64,000 nucleotides of DNA from Lytechinus pictus (Eukaryota): NCBI RefSeq assembly GCF_037042905.1, contig NC_087247.1:5270001-5334000 (forward strand), in the 5' to 3' direction. The notes beneath the pieces are model-generated. The model saw nothing but the letters and a program-made list of their open reading frames with translations. It had not been told where the DNA came from and searched no databases. The translations under genes and the position numbers were made by a program. Positions 1,069-53,702 of the stretch are shown here, piece by piece. Numbering within the stretch: the stretch's first letter is position 1; each line of letters begins with the position of its first letter.

Positions 1069-2736
1069 ATGGACAGATTGTTTGTCATCGTTCTGTTTGT
1101 TGCTATGGCAACCATTACGACGGCAGCTCCTGGTAAGTCTATATAAAGATTAATGAATTTCTGTCATGGAGAATCATAACAAATTTGACTCTATCTTCTT
1201 GAAACGGCCTGTAATTACTTTACATTCTCCGAGAATGTCAAGTAGTTATAGACCGTTTCAAGACCATTTTTATTATTATCAATCGGTAAGAATATATTCC
1301 GTAACTCACATAATTATTTTGTAGGCCTAAACAGCCCATGGGCCCTCATGGGCCAGCCGTACGCATCTAGTCGCTTGTCTCACCCGAGCTTTTTGTATTA
1401 CCTTGTGATGTCAATATAAGGACAAGTTTTGTTTTCTTCAAATCAGTAGAACCTTTGATGTCCTATATCTGCATTAAAAAGGAAGCCTTATTTTTGTTAA
1501 AATTCCAAAAATGAAAAATCACAATTCCTTTCAAGCCGGGTATCCCTATTGCATAATGAATGTAATTGCATAGAAAGAGAGTTCTCCACGGTGATTCGTT
1601 GTGATGTGTTTACCGATAAATGACCGAATCTTTGAAAAAAATGTAAAAAAGGATGACATGGTTGAGGTTTCAGCTGAGAAATTTCATATACCAGGAGCAT
1701 TTGATTGGTTTACATTCCAAGTTTTAAAAAAGCTAGGTTTCTCATGATTTTTTATTCTTGGCACAAATAATGCCAAAATCCGAAATGTATTCACAAAACC
1801 CAAACTTTGAAATTACATTTAAAATGATTATCCCTACATTTTCTGAATCCACTTCATTTCTTCTTTCCATCGTAATTTTTCACTCATGTAGTTAACCAGA
1901 GCACAAGTGTGGAAGTTAAAGAACCACCGCAGAACATGTCAAGCGGCCAAATAGACACGATAGAGGGACCGAAAGAAGTATCGAGTCGTGAAGGAGAGGA
2001 ACCGAAACCGGTATCGAGTGGTGAACAGGGGAAATCGGAAGAAGTATCGAGCGGTGAAAAGGCGGAACCAAAAGAAATATCGAGTGGTGAAGAAGATGTA
2101 CCGAAAGAGATATCGAGTGGTGAAGAAGATGCGTCGAAAGAAGTGTCGAATGGTGAAGAAGAAAAACCGCAAGAAATATCGAGCGGTGAAGGAGAGGAAC
2201 CAAAAGAAATATCGAGTGGTGAAGGAGAAGATCCGAAAGAAATATCGAGCAATGAAGAAGGGGAACCGAAAGAAGTGTCGAGCGGTGAAGAAGAAGAAGA
2301 GCCGAAAGAAGTATCGAGTGGTGAAGAAGAAAAACCGAAAGAAATGTCGAGCGGTGAAGAAGATGCGTCGAAAGAAGTATCGAGCAATGAAGAAGATGTA
2401 TCAAAAGAAGTATCGAGCGGTGAAGAGGATAAACCGAAAGAAATATCGAGCGGAAATGAAGTTGGAGCTAAGGAAATATCCAATGGTGAAGGGTGGGTTT
2501 CGGAAGAGGTATCGAGTGGGGAGAAAGGGGAACCGAATGAAATATCGAGCGGTGAGGAACGGGAACCGAATGAAATATCGAGCGGTCAAGAACGGGAACC
2601 GAATGAAATATCGAGCGATGAGGGGACTATCATTAAAGACAATGACAAAGGAGATGACGACACTGATGATGACGATACCGATGATGATGATAATGAAACT
2701 GATGATGATGATGACGATGATAATGATGATGATTAG
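1069..2736 (+). CDS. Gene A: secreted Glu/Ser-rich repeat phosphoprotein, phosphodontin-like (~302 aa); join(1069..1132,1892..2736)
   Basis: Exon 1069-1132 encodes signal peptide MDRLFVIVLFVAMATITTAAP followed by G|GTAAGT (phase 1), with an upstream acceptor tgcAG at 1041-1042. Acceptor tgtAG at 1890-1891 restores the frame of ORF 1909..2736 (VNQSTSVEVKEPP...). There are about 20 repeats of 11-12 aa, E(I/V)SSGEEExPK, then a poly-Asp tail and TAG. The repeat matches my recollection of sea urchin tooth phosphodontin (no search run). Confidence 0.85.
1975..2640 (+). repeat. Coding tandem repeat, 33-36 bp unit (GAA RTA TCG AGY GGT GAA ...), ~20 copies
   Basis: Directly visible. It explains the spurious overlapping ORFs in other frames and on the minus strand. 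Confidence 0.95.
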
Positions 2737-17829: not shown

Positions 17830-18369
17830 TTGACAGGAGGAATACTGATGCATTAAATGGACCCAAACTATTGTCAAGCGGTTGGAATTGACAATTATGG
17901 CGCCCTGACCAATCGTTATGGATTTGACGATACATAAGATGGCTGTGATGACAATGAAGTAGATAACTGTGTTGACAATGATTGCCACATCGATGATGAC
18001 AGCGAAGGTAACGGCGATGATGATGCTTGTGATGACGACGTCGGTTGTGATATTGATGACGACAATGATGAAGATGATGATGACGATGATGACGATGATG
18101 ATTGCGATGATGATGATTGTGATGATGACAATGCTGATGATGATTGTGATGATGACGATTGTGATAATGACGTTGAATGTGATGACGATGACGGTAGAGA
18201 TGACACGGCTACTGATGATGGTGATGATGATTGTAATGATGGCGATAATTGTGATAATGACGGTGATGATGACGGCAAGGGTGACGATTGCGCAGATGAC
18301 GATGGTTGTGCATCTTTCACCGACGACGATGCCGATGATGGTCCTAGTAAACTTCTCACCCTATTTTAA
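17830..18369 (+). pseudogene. Orphan Asp/Cys-rich acidic exon, probably a disabled family member
   Basis: Frame 17938-18369 reads DGCDDNEVDNCVDNDCHIDDDSEGNGDDDACDDDVGC...DDCDDDDCDD...GPSKLLTLF* (143 aa, 14 Cys by my count). It is preceded in frame by TAA (17935-17937) and MDPNYCQAVGIDNYGALTNRYGFDDT. No signal-peptide exon was found upstream. Confidence 0.55.
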
Positions 18370-22277: not shown

Positions 22278-24336
22278 TTAATTTTCGGAGTGTATTTTAC
22301 GCATGTTCTGGTCGTTGCATTTGTCGTCGATACAACAAACCGAGTAGTTTAAATACTCTTTACCGTCAACATTCATATCACCTTGTAATTCACAATCATC
22401 GCTGTTCTGCTTGCAACGCCGTTCGATTTCAACTGTCTCGACCTTCATATTATCGTGGTTAAGGTTGTTGATAAGTCTCATCTATAAAATATAACGAGCC
22501 TGAATGTGTTATAAATTTATGCAGACCACTCCTATTCATATGCTGTACATGTATATTGATTGAATCCATTCAATTATACAAAATAACACGTTAAGTTCTT
22601 TTGGTGACAAGTTTTTAATGGACCTGGAAAGCGGGGGTGCTGGGGATGCTGAAGCACCCCAGAGATTTTCATTGGGGGTGCTGCTTGTATTATTTGCATA
22701 GGCTGCACCCCTAAGAATTATGGACGGTGTGACTACATTAACAAAAAACCCTTTCTTTTTTTGTCAAATTTTTTGGGACGAAAATGACCTGTATTTTGGA
22801 ATAAAACTTTTCTTTCTTTTGCTTGTCAAATTGATATAAGCACCATGCATGGTGTCATAGGCGGCGGAAGCGGGGGGAACCTGTCCCCCCTGAATTTGAG
22901 ATGGGGATTCTTTGTTGATAACCTTCTTTTTCTTTTTTTTTTTGCTTGTCAAAAAAAATTGTCGTTCCCCCCTTACATTTTGGTTGATAACCTTTTTTTT
23001 TGCTTGTTAAAATATGTTACTGGTCCCCCTAATTTTTTTGGCTTCCGCCGCCAATGCATGGTGTCCCCCACTTTTTTTAATGGGGGACACAATATGAAGT
23101 GTTCCTCCCCCAATACTTGTAGAGAGGGCAAATAAAAGAAAAAAGGAAGGAAGGAAAGCAAGAAGAAGAAAAGAAAACAGGAGAAAATGAAAAGCAAAAA
23201 TAAGAGGAAGACGAGTGATTAAATATCTACATAATTCTGAACCAAAAAGACTTTATTACAATCCTAACTCTAACCCCTCTAAGCCCTATTAATAATGCCA
23301 CCTTTACACGTTTCAATTGTCAAATAATTCCTCATTCTCCATACGTGCACCCAAACAATGTACAAACAGGTTCGCCAATGTCTTAACCGTACAAATAATA
23401 AACTTACGTAGCACTTTGTGACGCCTTGGTCACATTCGACGGGAGACATTTCATCTTGTAAATTTACCAGGCAGTATGATTCACCCTTGTCCCCATTGTT
23501 CTCACATGAATAACATTGGAGAGCTAGGGAGTAATCTTCAAAATAGATAAAAAACAAACATCACAACAAATAGTATGAAAGAATTGGTTTGCTCTAAAAA
23601 CGAATAAATGAAATAACAATAAATAAATGACAGGTAAACAATAATCATACACAACATCCTATAGTTTTTATGTTTCATATTAAACCATCTAATCTAAGTT
23701 CATGTTAGGTTTGTCATATCATATGATGCCCCTCATTTCAAGGCAAACTTAATTATCTATATTTCTCCGTATTTTAATGACTGTTTCAAATTTGTAACCT
23801 CTTCATGAATTTAGGCCAAATTTTACAATCAAGCTCGTATATACATATTAATGCTTAAAGGTGAAATTCAAACTTTCATAGAAATATCATGAAATCAGAA
23901 TTATTTGAGAAGTACACACTTTTTATTATTTGTAAAAAAACATGCCATCCTTATAAAAAATAAGTCTCAGCATAATTATCTCATTGAATTAGTGACTAAA
24001 ATCATATTTTGGCATTCCTGGACGATAAAAATTTAGTACAATACATAATTTCAAACTATGATAAAATGCATAAGAATATGTGAGAAGACGACGTCATCAA
24101 CCCGCTAACTGCACACGAGGACATACATAACTTTTTTACCAAAAAATGCAAAACTGAGCTAGTATTTGTTTTTTATTACTCCTTAATTTTTTTAACTTTA
24201 GATTTTACTCTGTTTATATGCTTAAACCACAAGCATAAACGATTCGCCCTAGCTATGAAAGTTATTAATGAATATTTGACTTACCTGCCATTATGCCCAC
24301 GATCACGAATGCTATCAACAGAAGTGAGCCTTTCAT
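22278..24336 (-). CDS. Secreted Ly6/uPAR (three-finger) domain protein, copy 2 (~127 aa); complement join(24336..24285,23535..23408,22481..22278)
   Basis: Exon sizes (52/128/204 nt) are the same as copy 1, all 10 Cys are kept and splice sites are intact. The last exon corresponds to ORF 22278..22481. Confidence 0.88.
22856..23056. mobile_element. hAT-like MITE nested in another repeat
   Basis: TIR catWggcggcggaagc with a perfect 8-bp TSD CATGGTGT. Confidence 0.85.
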
Positions 24337-26487: not shown

Positions 26488-28352
26488 CATAGATAAAAAA
26501 AAAAGAAAAAAAAGAATGAGAATAAAGGGGGAGAGGGTGGGGAATGTGCCATTTATGGTTGAGCGATCAGTACAGATACTTTCATCGTTCAATAAAGAAA
26601 GTGGTGCATGGCATAAACAACTTGTCAATGAAACTCAACAATGGTGTACATCGAGCTGCTACAGGACGCACTCTAACTTGCCTTGATGTGCATAGGCATA
26701 TCAGATAACCTGCGCAAGATTTCCCAGTGTCTGAGTGTATTTGGAAAACAGGAGATGTCATTTTTCTTTGACAAGTTTCTTCATGTGTTGAATTTACAAT
26801 TTCCATCCCTTCTTTGCTATCGGTGAGTGAAAGTGAAGTATGAATTGATTTATACATTCATAAAATGTTTAGTTGATCATGCAGGATGCATGGCAAAGAA
26901 TTACAGGGCCCAGTGGTAGGCTTACACTACCCACGGCAGAGTATTTTGAGAGCACTGTCGTTTTTTTTAAGGCTCAACTCCTCGGGTGGTTCCTGATATG
27001 GGACGTTGAGGAGTAAAGACAAAAAGAAGAAGAACCATGACAAAGTGAGTGGACAAAATGGCGTCGCAGAGTTGACGCTATTGACGGACATTTATCATGG
27101 TGAGCTGTATCACAATAAGAAACATGATAACATGAACATTATGAACAATGTAATCGCGCCGCCATTGTCGAGGCTGTAGTGATTGCCTTGAGTCATGTAA
27201 TTAAAATAAAGTGATGTGGTATGCGTCGGTGATCTGCAGTGATCTCCCTTTTCGCGTATCCCTACATGTATATCCTCTGAGGGAGGGCGCTATGAGATAA
27301 TGACGTCGTATGCATAGGCATGAGTTTGTTGGATGAACTGCTTCGCATCTTTGACAGCAATTTTAAGAAATTAATGTTACATTGTTGTACAAAAAGGATA
27401 TTGTTAATGAAAAATTATCAGTTTGGTCAAGGTGTATTGACAAAATTATGTGAGAAAATTGTATACAATTGTGATTTTGGTCCGACCGTGTATTTTATAA
27501 CATTAAGATTAACGTTATTGACTGTTACCATGTAATTAACTAAAAAGTAAATTGTAAATACAAAAGCCTCGATTTTACATAAAGATCCATAATTTTCGAG
27601 TACGCATACGGCACACTGGGGCAGCGATTTACTTGCGCTTCAACTCAAAAGAGCCTCAAGCACGTCTTAAACTTTGCCCTTTTGACAATTTGTTGTCACC
27701 AAGCATCTCTCTTATTAACTTCCTATCCATCAATGTATATTCAACCAATTCAGGGTGAAGCATTACTCTTTATCCATTCACATAATCTATTTATCTCATC
27801 GAGACGTGTATGTCTGCCGGTATTTGAAAAAGCGTAGAAGTCATTATGTAGACAACAATACAACTAAAGATTTGAGCATGCGCATTAAGCACAAATTTGT
27901 TGTAAGCGAATATCGCTTGAGCCCCTGAGTCCCCATAATCCGGCCAGTCTTTTACAAACCAAAAGTATTACACATTAATATTAATCTCCGTGACTGGATA
28001 ATTATGATTTCCTTATCAAATGTAATGTACACGAAAGCTGATATTGCTTGGTCAGTATCGGTCTCAAGCAAGACAAGCCAAAACACCCCACCCCCTCTCC
28101 CCTCAAGAAATGTACAATAGTCCAACCCCTGCGATTATCTGTATGGTTCAGTGTTTTAACAAGTATTTCATTCTATTGTTATTTTTCTGTGCGAGTGTCC
28201 GTGAATTGTTCGACGAACATCAAGTTACAATCGTAATCCCTCACGCATCGCCAAGATAACCATCACTGTCCACTTCTAAGATGCTATCACCTCGTGTGGA
28301 AAATGTGACTCATTTTAGTTTGGCATGCGTTTCAAATGACCACTCTGGACAG

Positions 28353-28506
28353 TATAAATGCAGGATGAAGGTTTCCCAAGGAACAGAGAGCATCGACCGA
28401 AGTGTAGATGGTGAAACACTTGCAAGGGTACAAAGTGAAATAGTGAAACAAGTTTGGAAAGTGAATAAAGGACAGACCTTACCCGAATCGCCTAGCAAAA
28501 ACAACG
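28353..28506 (+). promoter_or_regulatory. Candidate TATA box and non-coding exon 1 of gene B
   Basis: TATAAAT at 28353, strong donor ACG|GTAAGT at 28506/28507, and acceptor cacAG at 28960-28961 ahead of the ATG exon. Confidence 0.6.
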
Positions 28507-28974
28507 GTAAGTAAGCTATCGTGAATTAACGTATCATTTCAGTAGTTCAATGTTTCAAAATATTTTTAAAAACAATCGAAATCAAAATTAATTATTCGAC
28601 CCTCGATCCTGTGACTCATTTGAAAATGCTGCAATAAAACAAAATTAAAGTTCAAACAAATTATTGCAAGATGATCACCGCGCAATTAATATTTGAAACA
28701 TGTGAAATGAAAATAGACAGAATATTTAGTTTCGCAGTGTCTAAAAAATTGCATAATGTATATGATATATACAATTCTATAATTTTTGATGTTTTGGTGT
28801 ACAGGTATTTGTAATAATTATAATTTGATAAAGATATTATGTATTTTTTTTTCTTGTGTCTAGTGTCTACCAGGAGTATCGTTATAATTATTCCTTAGTC
28901 ACATACATATTGCTATGACCACTAATTTTCGTAAATAAAATCATGGTCGTTATCCACACAGATCCTGCCACAAG

Positions 28975-31900
28975 ATGTCTCGTTTTTGGATGATGCTAAT
29001 GTCTGTTCTTGTTCTCATCACAATCGCAACGGCTGCTCCAAGTAAGTATAGGCTGACTTAAAAAAAAACACGAAATAAGCCAAACATGCCAATCGTCTCA
29101 CTGGCGATGTTGGGAAAAAAAACTGTACAAGATGCTATAACTTTCCCGTCTCACCTGTTATACACGTTCAGCATGTTCAGAAAAAAATGCAAAGGAATAT
29201 AATTTATACTTTCAGAAGGTTATTACACTATACCCCTGATAAGGGGCGTCGCTACTGGGGGCAGAGGCAACTGTTTCCTATGTTTTCTGTAAGTAGCAAA
29301 AACGGAGAAAAGGGGATAAAAAAAAGAAAAGTAAGGGAAAGCCGGAAGAAAAATGAGTGGTATAAAAATGATAGCTATGAGTCGTGTAACTCGATATTAC
29401 CCTAGTGATACTTACTGATAAAAGAATTTGTCACGTTTAGATCATCTCACCCCCTTCCAAAACATACTGTTGTCGCCCAAACCCCTGATTTCAACGCAAT
29501 TTCTGTGCCATGAGCTATGACCATGCGCAAGAGTATCGTTTTGCTCAAACGAATTATGCAAAATATAATTGAAAAGGATGCCGGTCAAAGAAACAATTGC
29601 TAAATAGGTGTCCATTGGTGAAATAGTCAATCATGTCAATAGAAAATAATATTATGGTATATACTAAATAACATGTTATAAGTTGGCCTTCAGCGTGTTA
29701 ACATTTTTTTTTCATATTGAGATTGATTATTTCTTTGGGAGGGGAGGGCACGTCCCCCTTTAATACCCGAAATCACCACCTATGCGGGCGCTATAATCTT
29801 ATCCCCACAAGTCTTCAAAAGAACAACAAAAATGGCACACGAACCAAATGAAATTATGGCCCATTGGAGAACAAGCTCATCATAACTTAACTGCTAACGC
29901 GCTGATCTGTTAAAGGACAAGTCCACCCCAACAAAAAAATTTGAATAAAAAAAGAAAAATCCAACAAGCATAACATTAAACATTTCATCAAAATCTGATG
30001 TAAAATAAGACAGTTATGACATTTCAAAGTTTCGCTTAATTTCACAAAACAGTTGTATGGAAATCCTGGTCGGTATGCAAACGAGGAGACTGATGACGTC
30101 ATCCACTCACTATTTCTTTTGTATTTTATTATATGAAATATGAAATATTCTAAATTTCTCCTCATTGTCAAGTGAAACCGCGATTAATTCCTCCCTATAC
30201 ACGTGGAATTTGCATTCTTTAATACTATATGGTTCAGTCAAGTCGGTCCCTACGTTCAAATCTGTAAACAATTGAAATATTGTATAATTCAAACAATAAA
30301 AAACAAAAGAAATAGTGAGTGATGGACATCATCGACTGACTCGTTTGCATGTCACCGAATTGTTCAAATCACTGTTTTGTGAAAAATAAGCGAAACTTTA
30401 AAATACCATAACTTTCTAATTTTACATCCGATTTTGATGAAATTTTCGGTGTTATGCTAGTTTGATTTTTCTCTATTTATTCAAATCAACATTTTGCTGG
30501 GGTGGTCACACCGACAGAACTTTGCTGGAGCGGTCCTTAATGGTAGGGAGAGGGGGTCGAATTTCGACAACGCTCGTCATCGCGCGCAAATGGGGAAAAA
30601 AACGAAAACACGGGTGTTGCCTTAGCCGTGCATCGCTGAAGCCGGCGTTGCTTTAGCGATTGTTTAGTGGTGACACCTCCATACCAACGCCAAACCGAAG
30701 TTCATCACCGCAATGGATCGCGGCTTCAACGCCCGACACCGTTCCAGCAATCCCGTGTTCGCTCGTAAAACGCTTACAACCGTTCCACCAAAGTTTGTGC
30801 AACGTTTAATCACCGCAGCGGTCGTCCAGTTTTCAATATTTCTGCGTTGGCCTAGCGGACCCTAGCGTCCACGAACTTCCGTCTAGCAGTGCCAAACTTT
30901 TACTGGACGTTGTTGGAGCGGTGGTGAACTTTGCTGGAGCAGAAAATTGTCCGCTCCTCACCGCTTGCAATATTTTGTGCAGCTCAAAACTTTCGGAGCG
31001 GTAGGAGGGTCATCAGCGGTGACCTGATGTTAAACGGTGGTGAACGGTAACGAGCGGTGATGAAAAATTTTCACCGCTCCAGGAATGTTCTGGCGTTGTG
31101 ACCACTACTTTAAAGAGATTAAAAATACCACTTTCTCTTTTTTCCCTAGCTGAGCGGTTAAGACGAGATGACAGCTCAGCATGTGATGAAGATGAATGCG
31201 ATGGGGAAGAGGACGGTGATAGTGGAGATTGCGGAGAGGATTGTGATGAACTTCAAGAGGAAGATGATGATAGTGGCGGTGATGAGGACGAAAATGATGA
31301 CGATGACGACTGCGACAGTTGCGGTAAATTTTCTTCCGTTGGTATATCGCATGAAAGCGTGTAGTCATGGTGGTATTTACGAGGATTTAGACAAACTGAT
31401 GATTTGTTTGCGTAAAATATTTTTTATTGTTCAGAAAAAGCCTACCCTATCATGATTCGCATAGACACGAAAAATGAATTCTACGTCCTACCTGATTTGG
31501 TGCATACACATTCACATAATCTAGTCGTTAATCGGAATAGTGGCATTCACTTTTATGGGATTAATATGCTTTAATCTGAGTTCAGAATGGGAATGTTTTC
31601 TATTTTCCTTCAATAAAAAAATCACTGACGTTGTAAGCTATTATAAATCTTGGCTAAATGTGTTTACATTTTACTTCTCCGTATAAAGGATTCTTAAAGA
31701 TATTTTTTCAAATTTCATTTTTGTTCATTTAAGGAGATAGAAAGAAGAGAGACGAAGAAGATGAATGCGAAGATGATGAAAGTTGTGAAGATGACGAAGA
31801 AGACGGAGATGGTAAGAATATATATATATATATTTATTAATAAATTCTACCGATAAAGTCACAGTGCTTTCAATATTTTATATCATTTTGCAAATTATAT

Positions 31901-34900
31901 ACCATCATGGTTTGGCACAGTAGGATCTTAAACATGATAAATGACGTTAAAACAGACACTCCCGAAACACAACACAGCAAAGAACATAATCAAACGAAGA
32001 GTTATATTACCTTTCGACTCTACTGCCATTTAGATTTAATTCAAACCTTCATTTGGTCACCCTGGTTAACATAGGTTGCTGTTAATTGGCCAATTATATT
32101 TCATCAAATTTGGATGTAGAATAAGGAAGCTATAATTTTTTTTTGCTGATTTTTCACAAGACAGTTATATGCGCAATACATTCAGTGGTATGCAAATGAG
32201 AGAGCCGATGATGTCACTCACTATGTTTGTATTTTATTGGAAGGGAGGGGCAACTATTCCAAATAGGGGTTCATTATTTAGAGGGGGTGGGTTAATTCAC
32301 AACATTTCCGTGGCACTCGGGGCGTAAGTATAAGTTTTCCAGGGGTCAAATATAGGTGTATATTTATTCTCGAAAAAAAACCTCTCAAAAGCGAGGGAAG
32401 GAAGCAACCGAGATTAACACAATGTTACTCTGGCATTCTCTGCTCATCTATGGTCACAAAATATTAATGGATTGATGTATATTATATTGCCATTTCAGGA
32501 GACAGAAAGAGGAGAGACGAAGGAGACTTGGAAGATGATAGCAGTCCTGAAAATGACGGTAATCCTTATCTTCTTACTACTTCTCAATCTAACTATGAAT
32601 GCTTTTTGCAGTCCTAAGACTGTAATATAAACTTATTAAACATATTAGAATGAAATATATATTCTAAATGAGCCATATGTAGTCTGGCTGCCATTAACTC
32701 CAAAGAAGTATTTGAAAATCAATGAAAAGGTTCATAACATTTAGCATGGTTGTATTGCTAATTATATCTGACTGTTAGCATCGTCAACTACTAATTATGT
32801 TTTTACTTTATCATTACTTGCTTTTTACTTGCTTTTTTGCGTCATCATAATCCTTGCTTCTGACGGGCACGTGCACAATACAACCACATAATCTTTGTTA
32901 ATGTTATTTGTAAATATAATTTTAATACCATAATTGAATAATAGTATATTAATGAATGGCAACTTTAATGTTTCAGGCGACAGAAAGAGGAGAGACGAAG
33001 GTGACTTGGAAGATGATAGCAGTCCTGAAGATGACGGTAATTATTCTTTTCCCACTTACTCCTACCAATCTAAATCTGAACTCTACTTGCTATCCTCCAG
33101 CTTCATACCCTGTAAAGTAATATATATATATGTATATAAACTCCTCAAAAAAAGTTTGGAAAACTGACTTTGATCGATAATCCCTCCTCGGTTTTAGTGA
33201 AAATTAATGTGTGATGGATACCAATGAATAGATCATTTAATTTTCTTTAAAATTATACCATACATGATATGATTATGGTTCACATGGAGGTGCAGTGCCC
33301 TGAAATGTGGGGCAAGGTCAAAATTCAAAAGTTGCAAAATGACACAATATTGGAAGTCACTGTTCTTTTTTTCCGTGGTGACGAGTGGGTTTCAGCGGTT
33401 TCTTTTGTTTTCATGCACCTACATTAAAAATGGAATCAAACACTCCTCTGCACAAGCAAACACATAACAGACATGCATGGGTATTTCATACCACGACTGA
33501 AACCATGTTATATCACTGAAACATCACTACATAAACCACAACAAAACTTAAAAAATGAAGCAGGGGCTTGATTTGAATGGATTTTCATGTCTATTGACAC
33601 AGACAAAAAAAAATCATGTTCTTTATGACTATTTCTTCATGACTATTTCTGCTCGTTTTGCAGCTTTTTAATTTAGACCTCATCCAACACTTTTGAATCC
33701 TGCTCTTTTCGTGATGGCATGATCATAACAAGCATGGTATCATTTTAAAGAGAATTGAATCATCTTTAGAATGATATGAAATATGCATTGTGTGAAATTG
33801 GGAGTTGGGAGAAATTAATGGCCAAACTCAGATTTCCAAACTTTTTTTGAGGGGTTTATATAGTCTAATTGACCTATGTTATATATTAACTGCCAATAAC
33901 TCCAAAGCAGCCATCATGGCCATTGAAAATGTAAAAGTTCCTGTAACATTTCCCTTCCCTGGTTTTCTCAATGTTTATGACTGCCAGCATCGTCAACTAC
34001 TAATTCTGTCCTTGCTTGATTATTATTTTGTTTTGTGACTCCTTTGCCTCTGAGGGGCGGAACGATATATCTCTGCTAACATTATTGATATTTACAATTT
34101 TACTGCAAATCGATAGTGAAAATAATAATAATGATTAATTATATTTCCCTTTAGGAGACAGAAAAAGAAGAGACGAAGGCGACTTAGAAGATGATAGCAG
34201 TCCTGAAGATGACGGTAATCATTTTACTCTTACCCCTCCCCTCAATCTAAATACGAGATCAACTTTCACCCCCCCCCCCGACTGGAATCATTTAACTTAT
34301 GCCTTATTAAGTTAAAATTCCATGTTCTAAATGACTTCTGAATAATATTGACTGCCACGAGCTCTCAAAGAGTGAATTAAAATCAATTTAAACCTTTTTT
34401 TGTAATATTGGGCTCGGTTGGTTCGTGAATTTATCAGACTCTTTAAAATCAACAGCAATTATTTATAATTGCTATTAAATTGTCAATGTATTTTTTTCAG
34501 TGTCACCTATGCATCTTATGGACACATGGCAATAATATAATCTCCAGAGCGTTTTAATGTTACATTTTGTTATGTCATTTGATAGTAATGGAATCAATAG
34601 ATGTTATATTCCTATTTCAGGAGGCAGAAAGAGGAGAGACGAAGGAGATTTAGGAGATGATAGCAGTCCTGAAGATGACAAGGATTACGGTAATCCTTCT
34701 CTACTAACTATTACGGGGTGTTGCAAGTCTTTTTCGGGTCCCTAAATCAGTCATAAGTGTTGCAATTAATTGCAAATTCATGATTGATTGCTGATCTGTT
34801 TCTTGAAACATGGAGTGTAATCTCATTTGCTACAGTGAAAATTCCTTTATCAGTTGTAAAATTGCTACAGAATATTTGCAATCGATTGCAAATATTTTCT

Positions 34901-36391
34901 TGCAACACCCCCTTAGTCCTTCCAACATGTCCAATCTGAACCTGAATGGGACTTTGCAATCCTTCAACCTATAAGCTATGACACATTTACATTCTCGATA
35001 AATTTTGAATATATTGGCCGCCGTGAACTCCGTGTGAATGAATAAAAATAAATTAAACTTCATGTAAATTTTACTTGGCCGGTGTTTCCCAATGTTATTT
35101 GACTGTTATCATCAACTACTAATTTTGTTCATACATTATTACTACTTTGTTCGGTGTCGCCTGTGCCTCTAGTGGGCAAGTGTATTAGATGAAAATCAAA
35201 TGAAATATACAGTATGTATATATTTTTAATACTACTTGAATAGTAATGGATTTATGACAATCGTATTCCTGTTTCAGGGGACAGAAAGAGGAGAGACGAA
35301 GGCGACTTAGAAGATGATAGCAGTCCTGAAGATGACGGTAATTCTACTCCGTTTATTCCTCCAAATCCAAATGCTACTTGCAATCCACCAAATATAAGTT
35401 GGCGGATTTTTTAATCTTTTTTACAATTTTTTAAGTTAAAAATTTTTATTGACTGCCATGAATTATGAAAATGTAATTGAAAATCAAATCAAATTTCCTA
35501 CTATTTAGTCCGCTTAATTTGCAAATCGTATCAGACTGTTATCAGATTATCGGTATTAACTCTGGATTGTTGTTCATGTTTCTTTAGTATTGCTCTTTGT
35601 TTAGTTCACCTATGATTATGGTTGGCACCCGTGCAGTTACACACCACTGTGTTCGTTAGTGTTGTATACCATTTATATATTTTTTATTTTTTATTAATGA
35701 TAATTTTCATCGCATTTCAGGAGACAGAAAGAGGAGAGACGAAGGAGACTTGGAAGATGACAGCAGTCCTGAAGATGACGGTAATCATTCTCCTCTTATT
35801 CCTCCAAATCTCAATCCGAATGCAACTTGCAATGCTTCAATATGTTATGACATATTCATCTTCAGATTTGTATAAATTGACTGCCGTAAATTCCGCAAAA
35901 CAGTAACGAAAATCAAACAATTCCTCTAAAATTTGATGTTTTTTTTCAGACTGTTAACTCAGTGCATTTATATACTCTCAGTGACATGTCACATTCAGTT
36001 GATCAATCCTGAAGCTCCTTTAGATTTTTAAATCCAATTTTCGGAACTTTGCCAATCCGGTTTAAGCGCCATTGCTCTACTTTTAGCAAAAGCTATTAAC
36101 TCACTGGATTGACATTGCTTCAGTGTAGCATAAGATATGCATTGATGCATCTTCACATTTCTCAATGAAATACATGCCGGATTTTTTCTTTGACTGTCGT
36201 ATGAGATGAATGCAAAGTGGAATTTAGAATATTTGGAAATGAATTCAGAAATTAAATGTTATCATGGTGATATAAATACAACATAATTTTTTACTCGGTA
36301 ATTTAAATGCACAAGTTTCTATTTAATCTGTAAATGTCTTTATAATAACATTATTTTTCATATTTCTCATCTTGCAGGAGACAGAAAATGA
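28975..36391 (+). CDS. Gene B: secreted acidic-peptide polyprotein with repeated RKRR convertase sites (~233 aa); join(28975..29041,31150..31323,31734..31811,32499..32558,32977..33036,34155..34214,34621..34689,35278..35337,35721..35780,36378..36391)
   Basis: Signal peptide MSRFWMMLMSVLVLITIATAAP, then TERLRR-DDSSACDEDEC...DCDSC, GDRKKR-DEEDECEDDESCEDDEEDGD, six exons of consensus GDRKRRDEGDLEDDSSPEDD, and a terminal GDRK*. Every junction is AG/GT, phase 1, and every internal exon length is a multiple of 3 (174,78,60,60,60,69,60,60). Confidence 0.88.
29914..30505. mobile_element. TTAA-flanked Kolobok-like element (family also at 44173-44563)
   Basis: TTAA-aggacaagtccacc start and inverted arms. 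The right end runs into the next element. Confidence 0.7.
30500..31105. mobile_element. GC-rich MITE
   Basis: Imperfect TIR gtggtcacaccgacagaac / gttctggcgttgtgaccac, with internal gctggagcgg repeats. Confidence 0.6.
32460..35960 (+). repeat. Tandemly duplicated exon-plus-intron units (six 60-69 nt micro-exons)
   Basis: The exons are near-identical. The introns keep decayed shared motifs (GTAAT donor, gactgcc, gactgtt, catcgtcaactactaatt). Confidence 0.9.
33138..33858. mobile_element. Tc1/mariner-like MITE in an intron of gene B
   Basis: TA-aactcctcaaaaaaagtttggaaa...tttccaaactttttttgaggggtt-TA, inserted in a TA-rich stretch. It accounts for the longer intron between micro-exons. Confidence 0.8.
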
Positions 36392-36828
36392 AGATACTTT
36401 GAGGCACTTCTGCTGCCGACGTTGAGAAAATATATTGGAGATTGGAGAATATTGCCTTAACTACGGCACATTAATATTATTTTCAAAGTATAAATATATG
36501 TTAAATAAATTAAAAAATTAAAAAAATACCCCCCAAAGAGAAAAAGATAGGTGTACATAAGAGGAAAATTTTGAGCAGGAGGCTGAATATCATGATGTCA
36601 CAGGTATTAAATTTAATATAAAAAAAATAGCGCTATACTTCTGCTTTGAAACTACTTTCATGAAAACATTTCTGCCAGTCGCAAGAGCACGTATTTATTG
36701 CGAAAATTATAATTTGCTTTCACAGAGCCCCCCCCCCCCATCTATCATTTACACGTTAATATTTCTTAATTTACATGACATATCGCTTGCATCACACTTT
36801 ACCTCGTGCGTTAATCCATTTTGACGTA

Positions 36829-44038: not shown

Positions 44039-47000
44039 ATGAACCGCCTGTGGATGTCGCTGGCTCTTCTTCTCACGCTGTTGGCCCTGTCAAACGCAGC
44101 ACCAGGTAGGGCCTATATAACGCATAATGAGTAAATCAGTCGGGGCCAAATAGAAGGAGTGGGGTTATTTAAAGGACAAGTCCACCGTAACACAAAGTTG
44201 ATTTGAAAAAAGAGAAAAATCCAACAAGCATAACACTGAAAATTTCATTAAAAACGGATGCAACAAATAAGAAGTTTCGCTTAATTTCACAAGATAGTTA
44301 TATGCACATCCTGGTCGTTATGCAAATGAGGGAACCGATGACACCACTCACTCACTATTTCTTTTGTATTTTAGTGTATGAAATATTTAAATTTTCTCCC
44401 CAGAGACTAAATTGTGCATATAACTATTTTGTGAAAAATAAGCGAGATTTAACAATGTCATAACTATCTCATTTTACATCCGATTTTGATGAAATTTTCA
44501 GTAATATGCTTGTCTGATTTTCTTTATTGATTCAAGTAATTTTTCTGGAGGTGGATTTGACCTTTAAGAGGGTGTTGTCTCAACAATGATGCACATTTTT
44601 ACTGTAGTAAACATTGAACTGGCACTGCATGATGGACAATAACTTTCCGTATTAGTCTGAGGAAAATGTGATAAAAAGTTCGGATCCACTATGTAGATGA
44701 CGCAGGTTTTATAATTTTTCTTCCACAAACTGACCTTCGGGCTGTTGATAATGTTGACTGATATTATTTAGAAGTAAGGTAGTAATGGCTGTTTGTTCAG
44801 CTTATGAAATTCAAACAAGTTGAAATCCCAGTACCATTAAGATTATAGTTCATTATTATGTACAAATACATTGCAACAAGATAAGTGAAATCCGAATTAG
44901 AATCTTATTCGCAAATAATGGCATAAAACAATTTATTTCCCGCTTCTCTTTTAAATCAGCGGAAAGAATTCGAAGAAGTAGCAGCAGTAGCAGCAGCAGC
45001 GAGGACTGTGACGGGTGCGATTGTGATGGGGATTGTGATGGCGATGGTGGTGGAGACTGTGGCGGTGATTGCGGGGGAGATGGTGATGGCGGTGATGGTG
45101 ATTGTGGCGGAGACTGTGGGGGCGATGGGGGTGACGGTGGGGGTGATGGTGGAGATGGTGGTAGTGGTGGTGGCGATGGCGATGGCGATGGGGATTGCGG
45201 CGATGGTGGCTGTAATGGTGATGGTGGTGACGGTGATTGTGGTGGTGACGGCGGTGATTGTGGTGGGGATGGTGATGGGGGTGGGGATGGGGATGGTGGC
45301 TGCGATGGCGGTGACTGTGATGGTGGTGATGGTGATGGCAGTGGTGGTAATGGTGGCTGTGATGGTGGCGACTGTGATGGCGGAGGATGTGATGGAGGAG
45401 GATGTGACAGCAGTGATAGTGACAGCGATAGTGACAGTGGAAGTGACAGCTGCGACAGTAGCTCTGAAGGGTGCGACAGTTCAGACTCCGATTCCGACTC
45501 TGATTCCGACTCTGATTCTGATTCCGGCTCGGACAGCAGCGAGGAAGGAGGATGCGGTGGTGGTGGAGATGGTGGTGGAAATGGTGGCGGCGGAGATGGT
45601 GGTGGAAATGGTGGCGGAGGTGACTGTGGTGGTACCAATGCGATATCCGTCGCAGCTCCAGACGTACAGGTAGTGGAAGTGGAAAAACCAGTGTATATCC
45701 CAGTACCGGTTCCTGGTGGTGATGACGGCGACGATGATGGAGGAGATGATGACGGAGGTGATGATGGCGGTGATGACGGTGGTGATGATGGAGGAGATAA
45801 TGGCGGTGATGACGGTGGTGATGATGGTGGCGATTATGGTGGTGATGACTATGGAGGGGATGACGATGGTGGTGATGATGGTGGTGACTACTACGGTGGA
45901 GATGATGGTGGAGACGATGGTGGAGATGATGTTGGTGGAGATGATGATGGTGGAGATGATGTTGGTGGAGATGATGATGGTGGAGATGATGATAATGGCG
46001 GTGATGACGATGGTGATGGAGGTGATTGTATTGCATTGGGAGGTGGTCCTGGATGTGGCGCAATGCAAGCTGGTGATCTTAACTCCCCAGGTAAGAAAAT
46101 AAGTCTCTGAATGTGATCGTAAATGATTTTCTCATGACTAAATATTAATATCTCATTAGGTCTAAATAGAAAATGCATGATATTTCATTAAACAATTAAT
46201 CTTAAACTGTATTGATAAAGGATCATATTTTATTATTGACATCATTTCCTGATCTAAAATTGCAAATGCATAATGAGGCACACAATTTGTATCAGATAAA
46301 TCAGGTTTATGTAGTATGAACTCCACTGATCGTTTTCGTATCGTATCACATATTAAATATAATTTCCTCCACAATGTCATGCCTATTCCACGGGACCGTG
46401 ACATGACAAACTTTTATTCTCAATCATATACATGTATACTAAAAAGACAACCGCTATTTCAATATCTGATCGACTTATTGTGGTTCGGATCTGTACATTG
46501 ATATAAATTAACCTTTTCCTATAGATGCTGTCATGAGCTCACCCTGTTCTGAATGTCCTCTCTTCATCTCCCGTACTGATGCCGTTTGCGGATCAGATGG
46601 AGTCACATACGATAACCTATGCGAATTACGCCATGCTGCATGCCAACTAGGAGACAAATCAATTCGAGTCGCCAGTGAAGGCATTTGTGCAGGTACGAAC
46701 TAAGCAAGGCTTGTTGCGCAGTCACATTTCGCCTACGGTGGCCGTCCGGTGAGTCAAAACAGCCGTTTTTTAATTTTTGGAACAGGTTCCTGAAATCCGT
46801 AAAATGGCTGTTTTTCGACTCCCCGTGTGGACATCGTAATGGAAAAGTGACTGCAGCATTAGTACCGCGGGTAAAAGGAAAATTCTGACCTTGAAATAAT
46901 CAAAATGGTCTAATATTGACTGACATCTATTCAGAGATCGATGATTCTACACGGCTGAGAGGGCTTTTCAAACTGCGACGTGGCGCCACCGTGACAACCC

Positions 47001-49665: not shown

Positions 49666-52600
49666 TTACTGAAACTGATTAGCCAGGTTGATTGTCTTTG
49701 GCGATACTGTTAGGGGGAAACAAAAGAAAACAAGGGAGGAAAATTATATTTCATTAAATTATCTACGAAGTTTAGATCATTGGTATTCATTTTACAGTGA
49801 GTACGTTGTAAGTTCAATGTTCCTATAGTGAATATTAAAAAAAACAACAATTATCACGATAAAAAATGACCTAACTAACTTTGCTTTTGAGGCAAGGGTG
49901 AGGATTTAAAAAAAAGAAAAAAGAAGCTTACTGCGGTTACGACTACAGATGGCGCTGTTAAAACATTGGTTGGCACAAAATATGATCACAAATTCGTTGA
50001 ATATAATCCGCACGGAGAGGATCACCCAGTATCTGTCATCGGTTAATCGTCCGTGGGTGTGAATCCCGATAGCATCGACTCATAAATACAAACTTCCTCG
50101 AAAATAATCCCTGAAAATTCTCAAATGACATCCCACTAGAGCGGACGAAAGAGGTGAAATAGATTTGATATGGAGAGGCAAATTAAGGGTACAATTTGAG
50201 GCCGCTTTCAGCTGCCGTTCATTAAATATAAATGTATTTTACTTGATCCTACAACTATGTAGTTTGACTTAGCTCTGAAAAAATTCCCTCCACATTAGAC
50301 GAAAATTTAGAAAGCCTATAAAAATTAATAAGAACAATTTATAAGAAAAGAAATAAAAAGAAACACAGACATGACATATCGGTATGCAACAAATCCCTTC
50401 CACTGAGAACATCCTTCCTTGAACCTCCCCCCCTAAAAAAAAAAACAGTACCCACAGTGCGTGCCACAGTGTATTCATAATTTAGAACACAATGTGAAAT
50501 CTTCTTTACACTATTAATTTGATCATTTAAATAGTATGAAGCACATATTGACATAGTTGATCATGTGAACACGCTGTGATAAGTCTCACTGTCGAGGTGT
50601 CCACAGTGTGAACATATCTTCACTCTGTTGAAATTGAGCACTTCAACAGTGTGAATAATATTTTCATATAGCCAGCTATGTAAACACAGTGATCACACTT
50701 GTTTTGTTTTCTAGTAGGAATAGCTTTGATGTATGTATAGATTTTGATTTTTAACGATTAATCTATTTATATTTTTTTTTTTGGTTTAATTGCCAACTGT
50801 GTGCCAAAAACATAATTTTTTTTTTATTCACAGATAACATGACAATAAATACAAATATGAACCTATTTATTATACTGTAGGACTTGGTATAAAACTCCTA
50901 TGATATTTTCACATCAGTTGCATATCATTGTCCTGAATTTCCCCAAAACTTACAATTGCAACTGCCCATCTTTGCTCGCTTAAGACTTGGGTCATTCGTT
51001 CTGCATGCAGCCAACTTAAGGTGACATAGGCTTTTGTAGGTTCGATTGTTTGTGCCGCACACACGCTGCGCTCGAGGGGTGTGGAATGGGCAATCGGCGC
51101 AGATGGGACTCGCTAATCTGCCAGTGCCTGCTGGAGAGTACCAGAAAAAAGGGCAATTCCATGAAATATTTTGTATGTCCGATTTTTTTTTCATTTTTAC
51201 TTGAAATTCAAGAACTGCTCATACTATGATTATTCGAGAGCATTACAAATATCAAATGAAAAAAAAGAAGAAAAGTACATGTCAAAAAAGACCCATAGAT
51301 AGTTGGACCTACTCACTAGTACTTTATCGAATTGCCCAAGAAATGTTGTTGTTTTGTTGTCGTTTCACGAGCGCTCTACTTTTAAACCAATTCGATCATG
51401 ACAATTTTTACAAGATGGGAGTGATAGCTAAACGAAGTTATTACTACGACCGGATGACGTCATTTTCTGAACGTATCAAGCTGTCCAAAATTTGAAGCGC
51501 CTCCTTCAAGATATCTTGGTCGTAGGTACGATCTAGAATATCGACCTTTTTCGTTCTACTTCCGTTGTACTTAAAACATATATAGCTTTTATGAATATTT
51601 ACCATTTCCGGGCGGTGCATTCCGTTGTTCCTTTGGACAGTCATTTCCACTGCAGTCCTCCTCGTTATCTTTGTCTTCTTCGTCTCCGTTGTCTTCCTCA
51701 TCGCCATTGTCCTCCTCGTCTTTCTTATCCCCATCTTCCTTGTCCTCCTCGTCATTGTCTGCATCTTCCTCCTCGTCTGCGTTGTCTTTGTCTTCCTCGT
51801 CCGCATCATTGTCCTTGTCTTCTTCATCCTTGTCTTCTTTGTCTTTATCTTCTTCATCTTTATCTTCTTCATCTTGATCTTCTTCATCATTGTCCTCTTC
51901 ATCCTCCTGATCCTCCTCATCTTCTTCGTCCACCGCTGAGGACGCATCGTGGGGACCTGGAGCATGAGGAGCGAAAGGGGCAGCGGGGGCGTAAGGAACA
52001 CCCGGGACAGGAGCGTGCGGGGCGTATGGTGCATGGGGTGCAAGAGGTGCGTTAGGAAAACCGGGTGCAGGAGCAGCAGCTCCTAGAACTCCAGCACCTG
52101 ATGGGGCAGCAAAGCCACAGCCGTCTTCGTCGCTGCTGTCAGATCCACCACAGCCGGAATCGGAGTCGCCAGTGGGAGCATAACCTACAGGAGCATAGGC
52201 ACCGGGTGCTGCTGGAGCATATCCGACAGGTGCGGCAGGAGCATATCCACCAGGGGCAGCTGGAGCATAACCGACTGGAGCTGCTGGAGCGTAACCTGCG
52301 TGACCACCGATGCCAGCCTCTAGTCCTGAATAATGAAAGTTAAAAGAAAGAGCATTGCTATTTTCTGCTTATATTGTTGGGTTTGGGAATGTGTTTTAGT
52401 GTGAAGGTGTACTAGGCTTATATACGTTCGTATGTGACAAACTCATGAGCACTAACCACAAAAATGTAAGAGTATGTGGATGTGTGTGTATGTGGGAGGC
52501 CTACAAAACGTTGAGTTTCATGACTGTGAATAAAACATGAGTGGGTGATACAACAAAGACAAATTGTTAATAATAGTTTAGAAAACATGAAATATCAAAA

Positions 52601-53702
52601 TGCAAATTACCATGATAATGCTCTCCGCTGTCACTGTCGTCTTGGTCTACGCCGTAGCCTACTGCGCCCCCTACAGGAGCATAACCGACACCTGGAGCAG
52701 CTGGAGCGAAACCCACACCTGGAGCATATCCAGGAGCCACTGGAGCATGGGGTGCAGGAGCATATCCTAAATCTGGAGCATAACCTGTCTCTCCACTTGT
52801 GTCACCATGAACTCCTCCCGCTGGGGGATGAGGAGCAAAAGCAGGAGCCGCTGGAGCGTGGGGTGCGGGAGCATATCCTACACCTGGGGCGAAAGCTGTC
52901 TCTCCACTTGTGCCACCATGAACTCCTCCCGCAGGAGGATGAGGAGCATATGCAGGAGCTAATGGAGCATGGGGTGCGGGAGCATATCCTCCAGATGCCG
53001 GGGCATATCCTGCTCCAGGGGATGGAGCGTGCCCATATCCAGTTTCTCCGCTTGTGACACCCTCCGTTGGAGCATGGGGTGCGTAAGGTACAACTGGAGC
53101 ACGAGGGGCGGCGGGTGCATGTGGAGCGGCGGGAACAGGCGGGGCAAATGGTACAGCTGGAGCATGAGGGGCGTAACCTCCCTCTCCATGGCATGGCCCT
53201 GAATGCGCTACTTGTACTCCTCCATTTCCATTTGTGTCATCGTCATCATCATCGACATCGCACGCGTCATTGTAGGTAACACCATTATTGCCGCATACGG
53301 TACCGCTGACTCCTCTTGTACATTTGTTGGAATCTGTCGTGGCGTAAGAGATACGGCTCATTATTTGGATATTAAAGCAAAGGATAAGGATTTTATTTGG
53401 CTGGAAAGTTGAAGAAATATGAAGGCCAATTAATTGTTCAAGCTATTTTCAGTTGAATGAAAGTATAGACTTCATAACTTATTCCATGATTAACGTTAGT
53501 GTGTATCTAATATGTGATATAGCATATGCACTGTATCTATCTTTTTGAGGCCAAAAAACCCCACATGCCTGGCTGTCTTAATGAATCATATATCATGAAG
53601 AATATTGTGCAAATGGAATATTCACTTACGTGGCGCTGCATGTGTAAAACCTGTGAGACACAAGACAGCGAGAAGAACGGTTAGAAACCTGGCGGATTCC
53701 AT
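49666..53702 (-). CDS. Gene D: secreted Ala/Pro-rich acidic protein with a degenerate N-terminal and a canonical C-terminal Kazal domain (~578 aa); complement join(53702..53630,53333..52611,52325..51603,51130..50954,49706..49666)
   Basis: Signal peptide MESARFLTVLLAVLCLTGFTHAAP, then HSNKCTRGVSGTVCGNNGVTYNDAC...VAHSGPC, GYAP/APHAP repeats and an Asp/Glu tract. The Kazal exon reads CADCPFHTPRAQRVCGTNNRTYKSLCHLKLAACRTNDPSLKRAKMGSC. Terminal exon LSPKTINLANQFQ*. All junctions are phase 1 with internal exons of 723, 723 and 177 nt. It resembles the Ala/Pro-rich Kazal-bearing proteins I recall from sea urchin tooth matrix. Confidence 0.88.

Follow-up and report, generated by a model that had tools for sequence, protein, structure and literature searches.

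A micro-exon gene in a sea urchin tooth-matrix cluster predicted to encode a precursor of repeated acidic peptides

The silacidins of the diatom Thalassiosira pseudonana are short Asp/Glu-rich phosphopeptides that modulate mineral and derive from a repetitive secreted precursor cleaved at RXL motifs by an unidentified protease (PMC4557024). The ASARM peptide of MEPE is released by proteolysis, phosphorylated by FAM20C, and binds mineral, acting as a mineralization inhibitor (PMC7422707). The precursor of Pif, a carbonate-matrix protein of pearl oyster nacre, is cut at RMKR, and one of its products binds calcium carbonate (PMC11291548). In this study, we analyzed a 64,000-nucleotide (nt) stretch of the Lytechinus pictus genome (NCBI RefSeq assembly GCF_037042905.1, contig NC_087247.1, positions 5,270,001 to 5,334,000 of the forward strand; below, the window, to which all coordinates refer) and, within it, a gene at positions 28975-36391 on the plus strand. 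An earlier reading of the letters, made without database searches (below, the original prediction), had claimed for this gene a signal peptide followed by eight acidic modules, each preceded by a basic site and each carried by its own phase-1 micro-exon, and all of these elements were located in our analysis. The gene is real, spliced, expressed, and lineage restricted, and its repeated unit is under strong purifying selection. We tentatively read its product as a convertase-processed precursor of acidic peptides that would modulate mineral, and we hold this reading with something short of even confidence.

In overall design, the silacidins come nearest to this gene, as the original prediction had proposed in calling it silacidin-like. 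The layout of a repetitive acidic-peptide precursor is indeed common to both, but the RXL motif and the Ser-richness are not: the units here end in G-D/G followed by RKRR, no unit is bounded by an RXL motif, and the 16-amino-acid (aa) peptide has two Ser, whereas silacidins are Ser-rich and heavily phosphorylated. The analogy is one of layout only and not of membership; a sequence relationship is assumed to be absent, and a diatom, silica, and RXL cleavage stand against an animal, carbonate, and R-x-K/R-R. To our knowledge, an exon-per-repeat structure is not a known feature of the silacidins.

In function, the closest animal analogue is ASARM, found in MEPE and other SIBLING proteins; it follows Arg-Arg, spans ~18-20 aa, and is acidic, with Asp and Ser. 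Human ASARM, RRDDSSESSDSGSSSESDGD, and the L. pictus repeat, ..RRDEGDLEDDSSPEDDGD, both contain RRD and DDSS and end in DGD, a resemblance that is most likely convergence in low-complexity sequence. ASARM differs from the repeat described here in being a single C-terminal copy of a large protein, in its release by cathepsin B, in its phosphate mineral, and in having many more Ser. The RMKR cleavage of Pif provides a precedent for convertase-type cutting of an animal carbonate-matrix precursor; unlike a multi-copy peptide precursor, however, Pif undergoes a single cut that yields two large domain-bearing proteins, and its sequence is unrelated.

A further comparison is offered by phosphodontin, the major tooth phosphoprotein of Strongylocentrotus purpuratus, which is phosphorylated at the second Ser of EISSGE (PMC2830187). 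Like the gene under study, phosphodontin and the Kazal/Ala-Pro-rich proteins belong to the same cluster, have a phase-1 signal-peptide exon ending in ...AAP, and contain short acidic repeats, and phosphodontin also has an SSxE core (PMC2830187). Its repeats, however, lie in one large exon and are spaced by single Lys residues without convertase sites, and the protein itself was found in the matrix, whereas the L. pictus gene places one repeat in each micro-exon, has furin-type sites, and is absent from the S. purpuratus proteome supplements checked. Multi-copy neuropeptide and prohormone precursors combine a signal peptide, repeated peptides, basic convertase sites, and carboxypeptidase trimming. 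Their conserved unit is a receptor ligand and their acidic spacers are poorly conserved, whereas in the L. pictus gene there is no other content than the acidic stretch, and its conservation is strict. We know of no described animal precursor that encodes acidic peptides in multiple copies, each on an exon of its own, and none was found in our searches.

Exon structure, transcripts, and selection

Assembly of the gene by script from the sequence yielded ten coding exons on the plus strand that join into a reading frame of 702 nt encoding 233 aa, with frames and splice sites intact across all ten exons. Every donor is GT (mostly GTAAG or GTAAT), and every acceptor is AG with a pyrimidine tract before it. 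Coding exon 1 ends in phase 1, and the eight internal exons, of 174, 78, 60, 60, 60, 69, 60, and 60 nt, are all symmetric phase 1. The first coding exon (28962-29041) begins with 13 nt of 5' untranslated region, followed by the ATG at 28975; its coding part, 28975-29041, carries the predicted signal peptide to ...ATAAP and ends at a phase-1 GTAAGT donor. Exon 2 (31150-31323) encodes RLRR and then a 54-aa hyperacidic module with six Cys, and exon 3 (31734-31811) encodes RKKR and then a 22-aa acidic module with two Cys. Exons 4 to 9 are repeat exons 1 to 6. The canonical peptide is encoded by exons 5 (32977-33036), 8 (35278-35337), and 9 (35721-35780). Exon 4 (32499-32558), which encodes RKRR and DEGDLEDDSSPEND.., is a D>N variant ending in ...PENDGD; exon 6 (34155-34214) gives the variant ...PEDDGG, its peptide ending in ...DDGG because the following exon begins with GG; and exon 7 (34621-34689) is 69 nt long and differs by E>G and by an inserted KDY, giving the ...KDYGD form. 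These three identical copies and three variants are exactly those quoted in the original prediction. The last exon (36378-36509) holds a truncated repeat, ..GDRK, with the stop codon at 36389-36391, a 3' untranslated region, and AATAAA at 36504-36509, its 3' end being predicted. Exon 3, identical to the repeat exon at 22 of the first 24 nt, reads as a diverged copy of that exon, and the last exon reads as a truncated one. Tandem Repeats Finder did not detect the repeats of this gene because the units lie 440-1180 nt apart and the introns between them have diverged; this is a micro-exon gene of the kind overlooked by annotation based on open reading frames (ORFs).

Words from exon 2 were present in transcriptome-sized contig sets from six studies, and contigs of two runs (X1 and X2), together with two raw RNA runs (X35 and X5), were aligned to positions 30900-36700. 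The contigs of X1 and X2 contained GT..AG joints between exons 2 and 3 (31322/31733) and between exons 4 and 5 (32557/32976). RNA joints were also found between exons 7 and 8 (34690/35280), with a synonymous G>A difference, and between exon 3 and the opening 30 nt of a repeat exon. In both runs, the contig alignment starts exactly at 31150, which shows that the exon 2 acceptor is used, and the contigs continue 105 and 362 nt farther 5'. Contig depth was low (3-26) and extended over exons 2 to 10 in X2 and exons 2 to 9 in X1, with the last exon low and seen in X2 only, while non-repeat intron bins had zero contig depth in X1 and X2. Of the ten-exon transcript put forward in the original prediction, four junctions were thus found spliced and exons 2 to 10 covered; the joint of exon 1 lies beyond the aligned stretch. 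The joint out of exon 3, at 31810/35720, was considered as skipping of exons 4 to 8 and rejected, its 30-nt side being identical in exons 4 and 9. Three intronic segments (32064-32257, 33034-34003, and 34780-34973) reached depths in the thousands in four runs, with many variants and rearranged internal joints; these look like expressed multi-copy transposable-element fragments that stand outside the gene.

Of the computational results, the strongest concerns selection on the repeat. Identity among the six repeat exons is 92-97%, against only ~50%, with many gaps, in the 150 nt on each side of them. Pairwise differences among the six exons, counted by the Nei-Gojobori method, comprise 49 synonymous and 15 non-synonymous changes at ~10 and ~50 sites, respectively, giving a mean dS of 0.44, a mean dN of 0.021, and a dN/dS of ~0.05. 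Fifteen of the 20 columns of the 20-aa unit are invariant, and each of the five variable columns varies in one copy; the scored substitutions in the aligned unit are E>G and D>G in exon 7 and D>N in exon 4, with two further variable columns at the 3-residue insertion of exon 7. The codons of RKRR vary silently (AAG/AAA, AGG/AGA), and the encoded residues are constant in all six copies. The diverged introns and the silent drift together argue that the copies are old and that selection, not recent conversion, has preserved them. Altogether, the entire 20-aa unit, acidic peptide and basic site alike, is under strong purifying selection, a signal that by itself cannot separate cleavage from a structural repeat. 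It does bear out the earlier claim that the prohormone layout is inverted here, the conserved repeated unit being the acidic peptide and not a spacer.

In the L. pictus genome (812 Mb), the six copies described above are the only occurrences of the repeat exon, and exon 2 is present once; as both are confined to one locus, the gene has no paralogue there. When exon 2 was searched with HMMER against 1.84 billion representative proteins, one match was obtained, a 92-aa ORF that is not an annotated protein and lies on a 2320-nt genomic Logan contig (L008) of a related species. On this contig, exon 1 has 67 coding nt (1384-1450) and ends in the same phase, exon 2 has 171 nt, and conservation extends to the signal peptide, the ...AAPTERLRRD junction, and each of the six Cys; judged by these features, the contig carries the orthologous exons 1 and 2. 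When the 106-aa open frame that contains exon 2 served as query in a word-indexed search of proteins of 58-185 aa, only the same ORF was returned, and the open frame enclosing repeat exon 6, used to look for orthologous repeat exons, gave no candidates. No Pfam family was assigned to exon 2 or the neighboring acidic ORFs, and an LDL-receptor class A-like identity for the six-Cys acidic module, being without Pfam support, was dropped. A literature search for the peptide strings found no paper. The gene had not been recognized as a described one in the original prediction, and our searches likewise found neither an annotated counterpart nor a publication; we regard it as probably new and undescribed.

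Upstream of the gene, a block at 27862-28368 (+) ends at a TATA box, TATAAAT, at 28353-28359, and is conserved in the related species, where positions 332-851 of L008 match it with 73% identity over 532 nt; the introns of the two species are unalignable. The block is probably a promoter or cis-regulatory element, and a promoter-block search within the window found no copy of it shared with other genes of the cluster. As the RNA contigs extend farther 5' of exon 2 than coding exon 1 alone would allow, an extra 5' exon is predicted. The candidate is a non-coding exon at ~28385-28506 (+; start approximate), ~30 nt 3' of the TATA box and with a GT donor at 28507, and the upstream layout of L008 matches it, with a donor after ...gaacactg.

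Predicted processing and alternative explanations

The product is predicted to be secreted, with a signal peptide that has Arg3 in its n-region, a 17-residue hydrophobic core, and an A-T-A/A-A-P c-region. Eight R-x-K/R-R sites lie at residues 25, 83, 109, 129, 149, 169, 192, and 212 (RLRR, RKKR, and six times RKRR), so that all eight basic sites agree with the furin consensus named in the original prediction. P4 and P1 are Arg and P2 is basic at every site, and variation is confined to P3 (L/K) and P2 (K/R), that is, to where the furin consensus allows it, which counts for cleavage. The motif R-x-[KR]-R with an acidic residue immediately after it was found in none of the other acidic open frames of the window (at least 20 aa, >30% Asp+Glu). 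Asp and Glu make up 51% and Arg and Lys 16% of the mature protein, whose eight Cys are all in the 54-aa (six) and 22-aa (two) modules. The six near-identical peptides of 16-19 aa have a net charge of approximately -10, 56-63% Asp+Glu, a single Leu, and an aromatic residue, Tyr, in one variant only. Their calculated monoisotopic masses are 1708.571 Da for the canonical peptide and 1707.587, 1650.565, and 2042.735 Da for the variants, each higher by 79.966 Da for every phosphate. S-P-E occurs once in each repeat and S-C-E once in exon 3. The same genome contains at least five convertase loci with a P_proprotein domain and at least three Fam20 loci. The Fam20C motif invoked in the original prediction, S-x-E, is accordingly present in every repeat and in a genome with Fam20 loci, but each peptide has only one such site, with Pro at +1. 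Two features of single copies were also observed: the KDY of the exon 7 variant (34621-34689) puts Tyr among acidic residues, a context of the tyrosine-sulfation type, and the copy preceding exon 7, the only one of the six with a C-terminal Gly before RKRR, would have a possible amidation site.

In the processing that we propose, a furin-type proprotein convertase would cut after every R-x-K/R-R in the secretory pathway, and a carboxypeptidase would then remove the basic residues. This would remove APTE, a 4-residue stub, together with the basic residues behind it, and would free the 54-aa six-Cys module, the 22-aa two-Cys module, and six peptides of 16-19 aa; in the last copy, which ends in ...GDRK and the stop codon, trimming alone would yield a peptide identical to the others. 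This truncated final basic site, DRK-stop, counts for cleavage, as does the lack of any K/R exchange in six old RKRR copies despite silent codon change. The Ser of SSPE would probably be phosphorylated by a Golgi Fam20-type kinase; its SSxE position parallels the mapped SSGE phosphosite of phosphodontin. Once freed, the peptides may modulate calcium carbonate deposition as small, soluble Ca/Mg binders present in high copy number, for example by stabilizing the amorphous phase or inhibiting growth. Cleavage, phosphorylation, the tissue of expression, and the role in mineral are what we infer here from the layout of the gene and its setting.

Several observations weigh against this proposal. The conservation of the RKRR repeat was seen among the copies of one genome only. 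The acidic residues at P5, P1', and P2' are suboptimal for furin, and the sole S-x-E of each peptide, with its Pro at +1, may be a poor kinase site. None of the peptide strings turned up in the supplements to three S. purpuratus proteome studies (tooth, phospho-, and spicule matrix), which is weak evidence: the species differs, a micro-exon gene is probably outside the search database, and small peptides without Lys or Arg are lost in dialysis and overlooked by tryptic workflows. The raw RNA runs X35 and X5 showed no exon coverage and intron coverage of transposon origin only, which, set against the positive X1 and X2, suggests sample-specific expression. Lastly, neighboring matrix genes alternate Lys and acidic blocks without a cleavage consensus, so that basic patches can be structural.

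This last point leads to the main rival, an intact secreted polyampholyte matrix protein, whole or minus its N-terminal stub, in which RKRR patches would be structural, with possible roles in binding anionic partners, in self-association or coacervation with the acidic blocks, or in anchoring to matrix polysaccharide or sulfated components. Basic/acidic alternation is common in the cluster, as in the Lys-preceded DEED repeats next door (PMC2614417), and the eight Cys could cross-link such a protein. Purifying selection on the full unit is equally expected of a structural repeat, and the acidic P5, P1', and P2' residues are less than ideal for convertases. It fits less well with the exactness of all eight sites, which vary only where the consensus permits, since an electrostatic patch would tolerate K/R swaps and the six old copies have none, or with the end of the gene in a truncated basic site. 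Moreover, a secreted chain with eight such sites meets the convertase compartments, and the genome encodes convertases. We consider an intact matrix protein rather unlikely.

Cleavage might also serve an end other than mineral, the product being a neuropeptide- or hormone-like precursor or a granin-like protein for Ca buffering or granule sorting. A signal peptide, basic sites, and repeated peptides are the classic prohormone layout; one copy has the possible amidation Gly, one has Tyr in a sulfation-type acidic context, and expression is sample restricted. Five of the six peptides, however, are without the hydrophobic or aromatic residues or the C-terminal Gly typical of neuropeptides, and all are highly negative (approximately -10). 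The location in a tooth-matrix cluster, the like signal-peptide exon, and an SSxE core that fits the phosphodontin phosphosite (PMC2830187) also speak for mineral, making a non-mineral role improbable. That the locus yields low-level spliced transcripts whose product has no selected function is very unlikely: the contig depth is low, and the large collections searched contain no annotated counterpart, but the dN/dS of the old copies, the ten exons with intact frames and splice sites, and the retention in the related species of exons 1 and 2, with their RLRR and Cys pattern, and of the promoter block all contradict it. A convertase-processed precursor of mineral-modulating peptides is the reading that we carry forward.

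The tooth-matrix cluster and the meaning of the gene

The original prediction had placed the gene in a mineral-matrix cluster, and the window substantiates this, with a phosphodontin orthologue, a Kazal/AP-rich/DEED gene, and like signal-peptide exons. The open frame at 1909-2736 (+) contains 11-aa repeats, including the exact peptide EISSGEGEEPK, and an Asp-rich tail, and is accompanied by a signal-peptide exon at 1069-1132 (+). The identical peptide, this type of repeat, and the tail all fit the published description of phosphodontin (PMC2830187), and on these features we identify the locus 1069/1909-2736 (+) as its orthologue; a database search with this ORF gave nothing significant, presumably owing to low complexity. 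On the other side of the target gene, a minus-strand gene at 51589-53702 has its signal exon at 53702, a region at 52567-53361 with a weak Kazal match (under the Pfam cut-off) and Ala/Pro-rich repeats of the YAPHAP type, and DEED repeats with Lys at 51589-51933. By description, it matches the Kazal/AP-rich tooth-matrix proteins Glean3:17590/22278 (PMC2614417). The target gene thus sits between the phosphodontin orthologue and the Kazal/AP/DEED gene.

A secreted gene with Gly/Asp repeats (GGDDDGGDD...) has its signal exon at 44039 (+) and its ORF at 45673-46110 (+), and its signal peptide, MNRLWMSL...NAAP, resembles that of the target, MSRFWMML...TAAP. All four signal-peptide exons, at 1069 (+), 28975 (+), 44039 (+), and 53702 (-), end in ...Ala-Ala-Pro plus 1 nt and then GT, in phase 1. 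This common ending points to an ancestral first exon shared across the matrix cluster, and a cluster with a common first exon suggests an echinoid family grown by tandem duplication, with a logic like that of the vertebrate SCPP genes. Two other observations concern the remainder of the window. An open frame at ~17930-18360 (+) is extremely Asp-rich and aspein-like, with Cys every 5-10 residues, a composition like that of the six-Cys module of exon 2, and exon 2 of L008 has weak blastn matches to it. At 24336 (-) and 9553 (-), ~14.8 kb apart, lie nearly identical signal-peptide exons (MKGSLLLIAFVI...) with near-identical flanks, a sign that a further secreted gene on the minus strand was recently copied by segmental duplication.

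The sea urchin skeleton and tooth are leading models of biomineralization via amorphous calcium carbonate, and their known organic matrix consists of proteins identified by tryptic proteomics of dialyzed extracts. It is possible, if doubtful, that this gene represents the first silacidin-type strategy in an animal, an exon-duplicated gene whose sole product would be many copies of an acidic (phospho)peptide released at furin-type sites and tuning calcium carbonate. Standard matrix proteomics would be blind to such peptides, which are dialyzed away and have no Lys or Arg. If the proposal is true, acidic peptides of ~1.7 kDa, at six to eight copies per transcript, would constitute a low-mass fraction of the matrix missed by current methods, and the repeat would offer a defined, readily synthesized peptide for crystallization assays.

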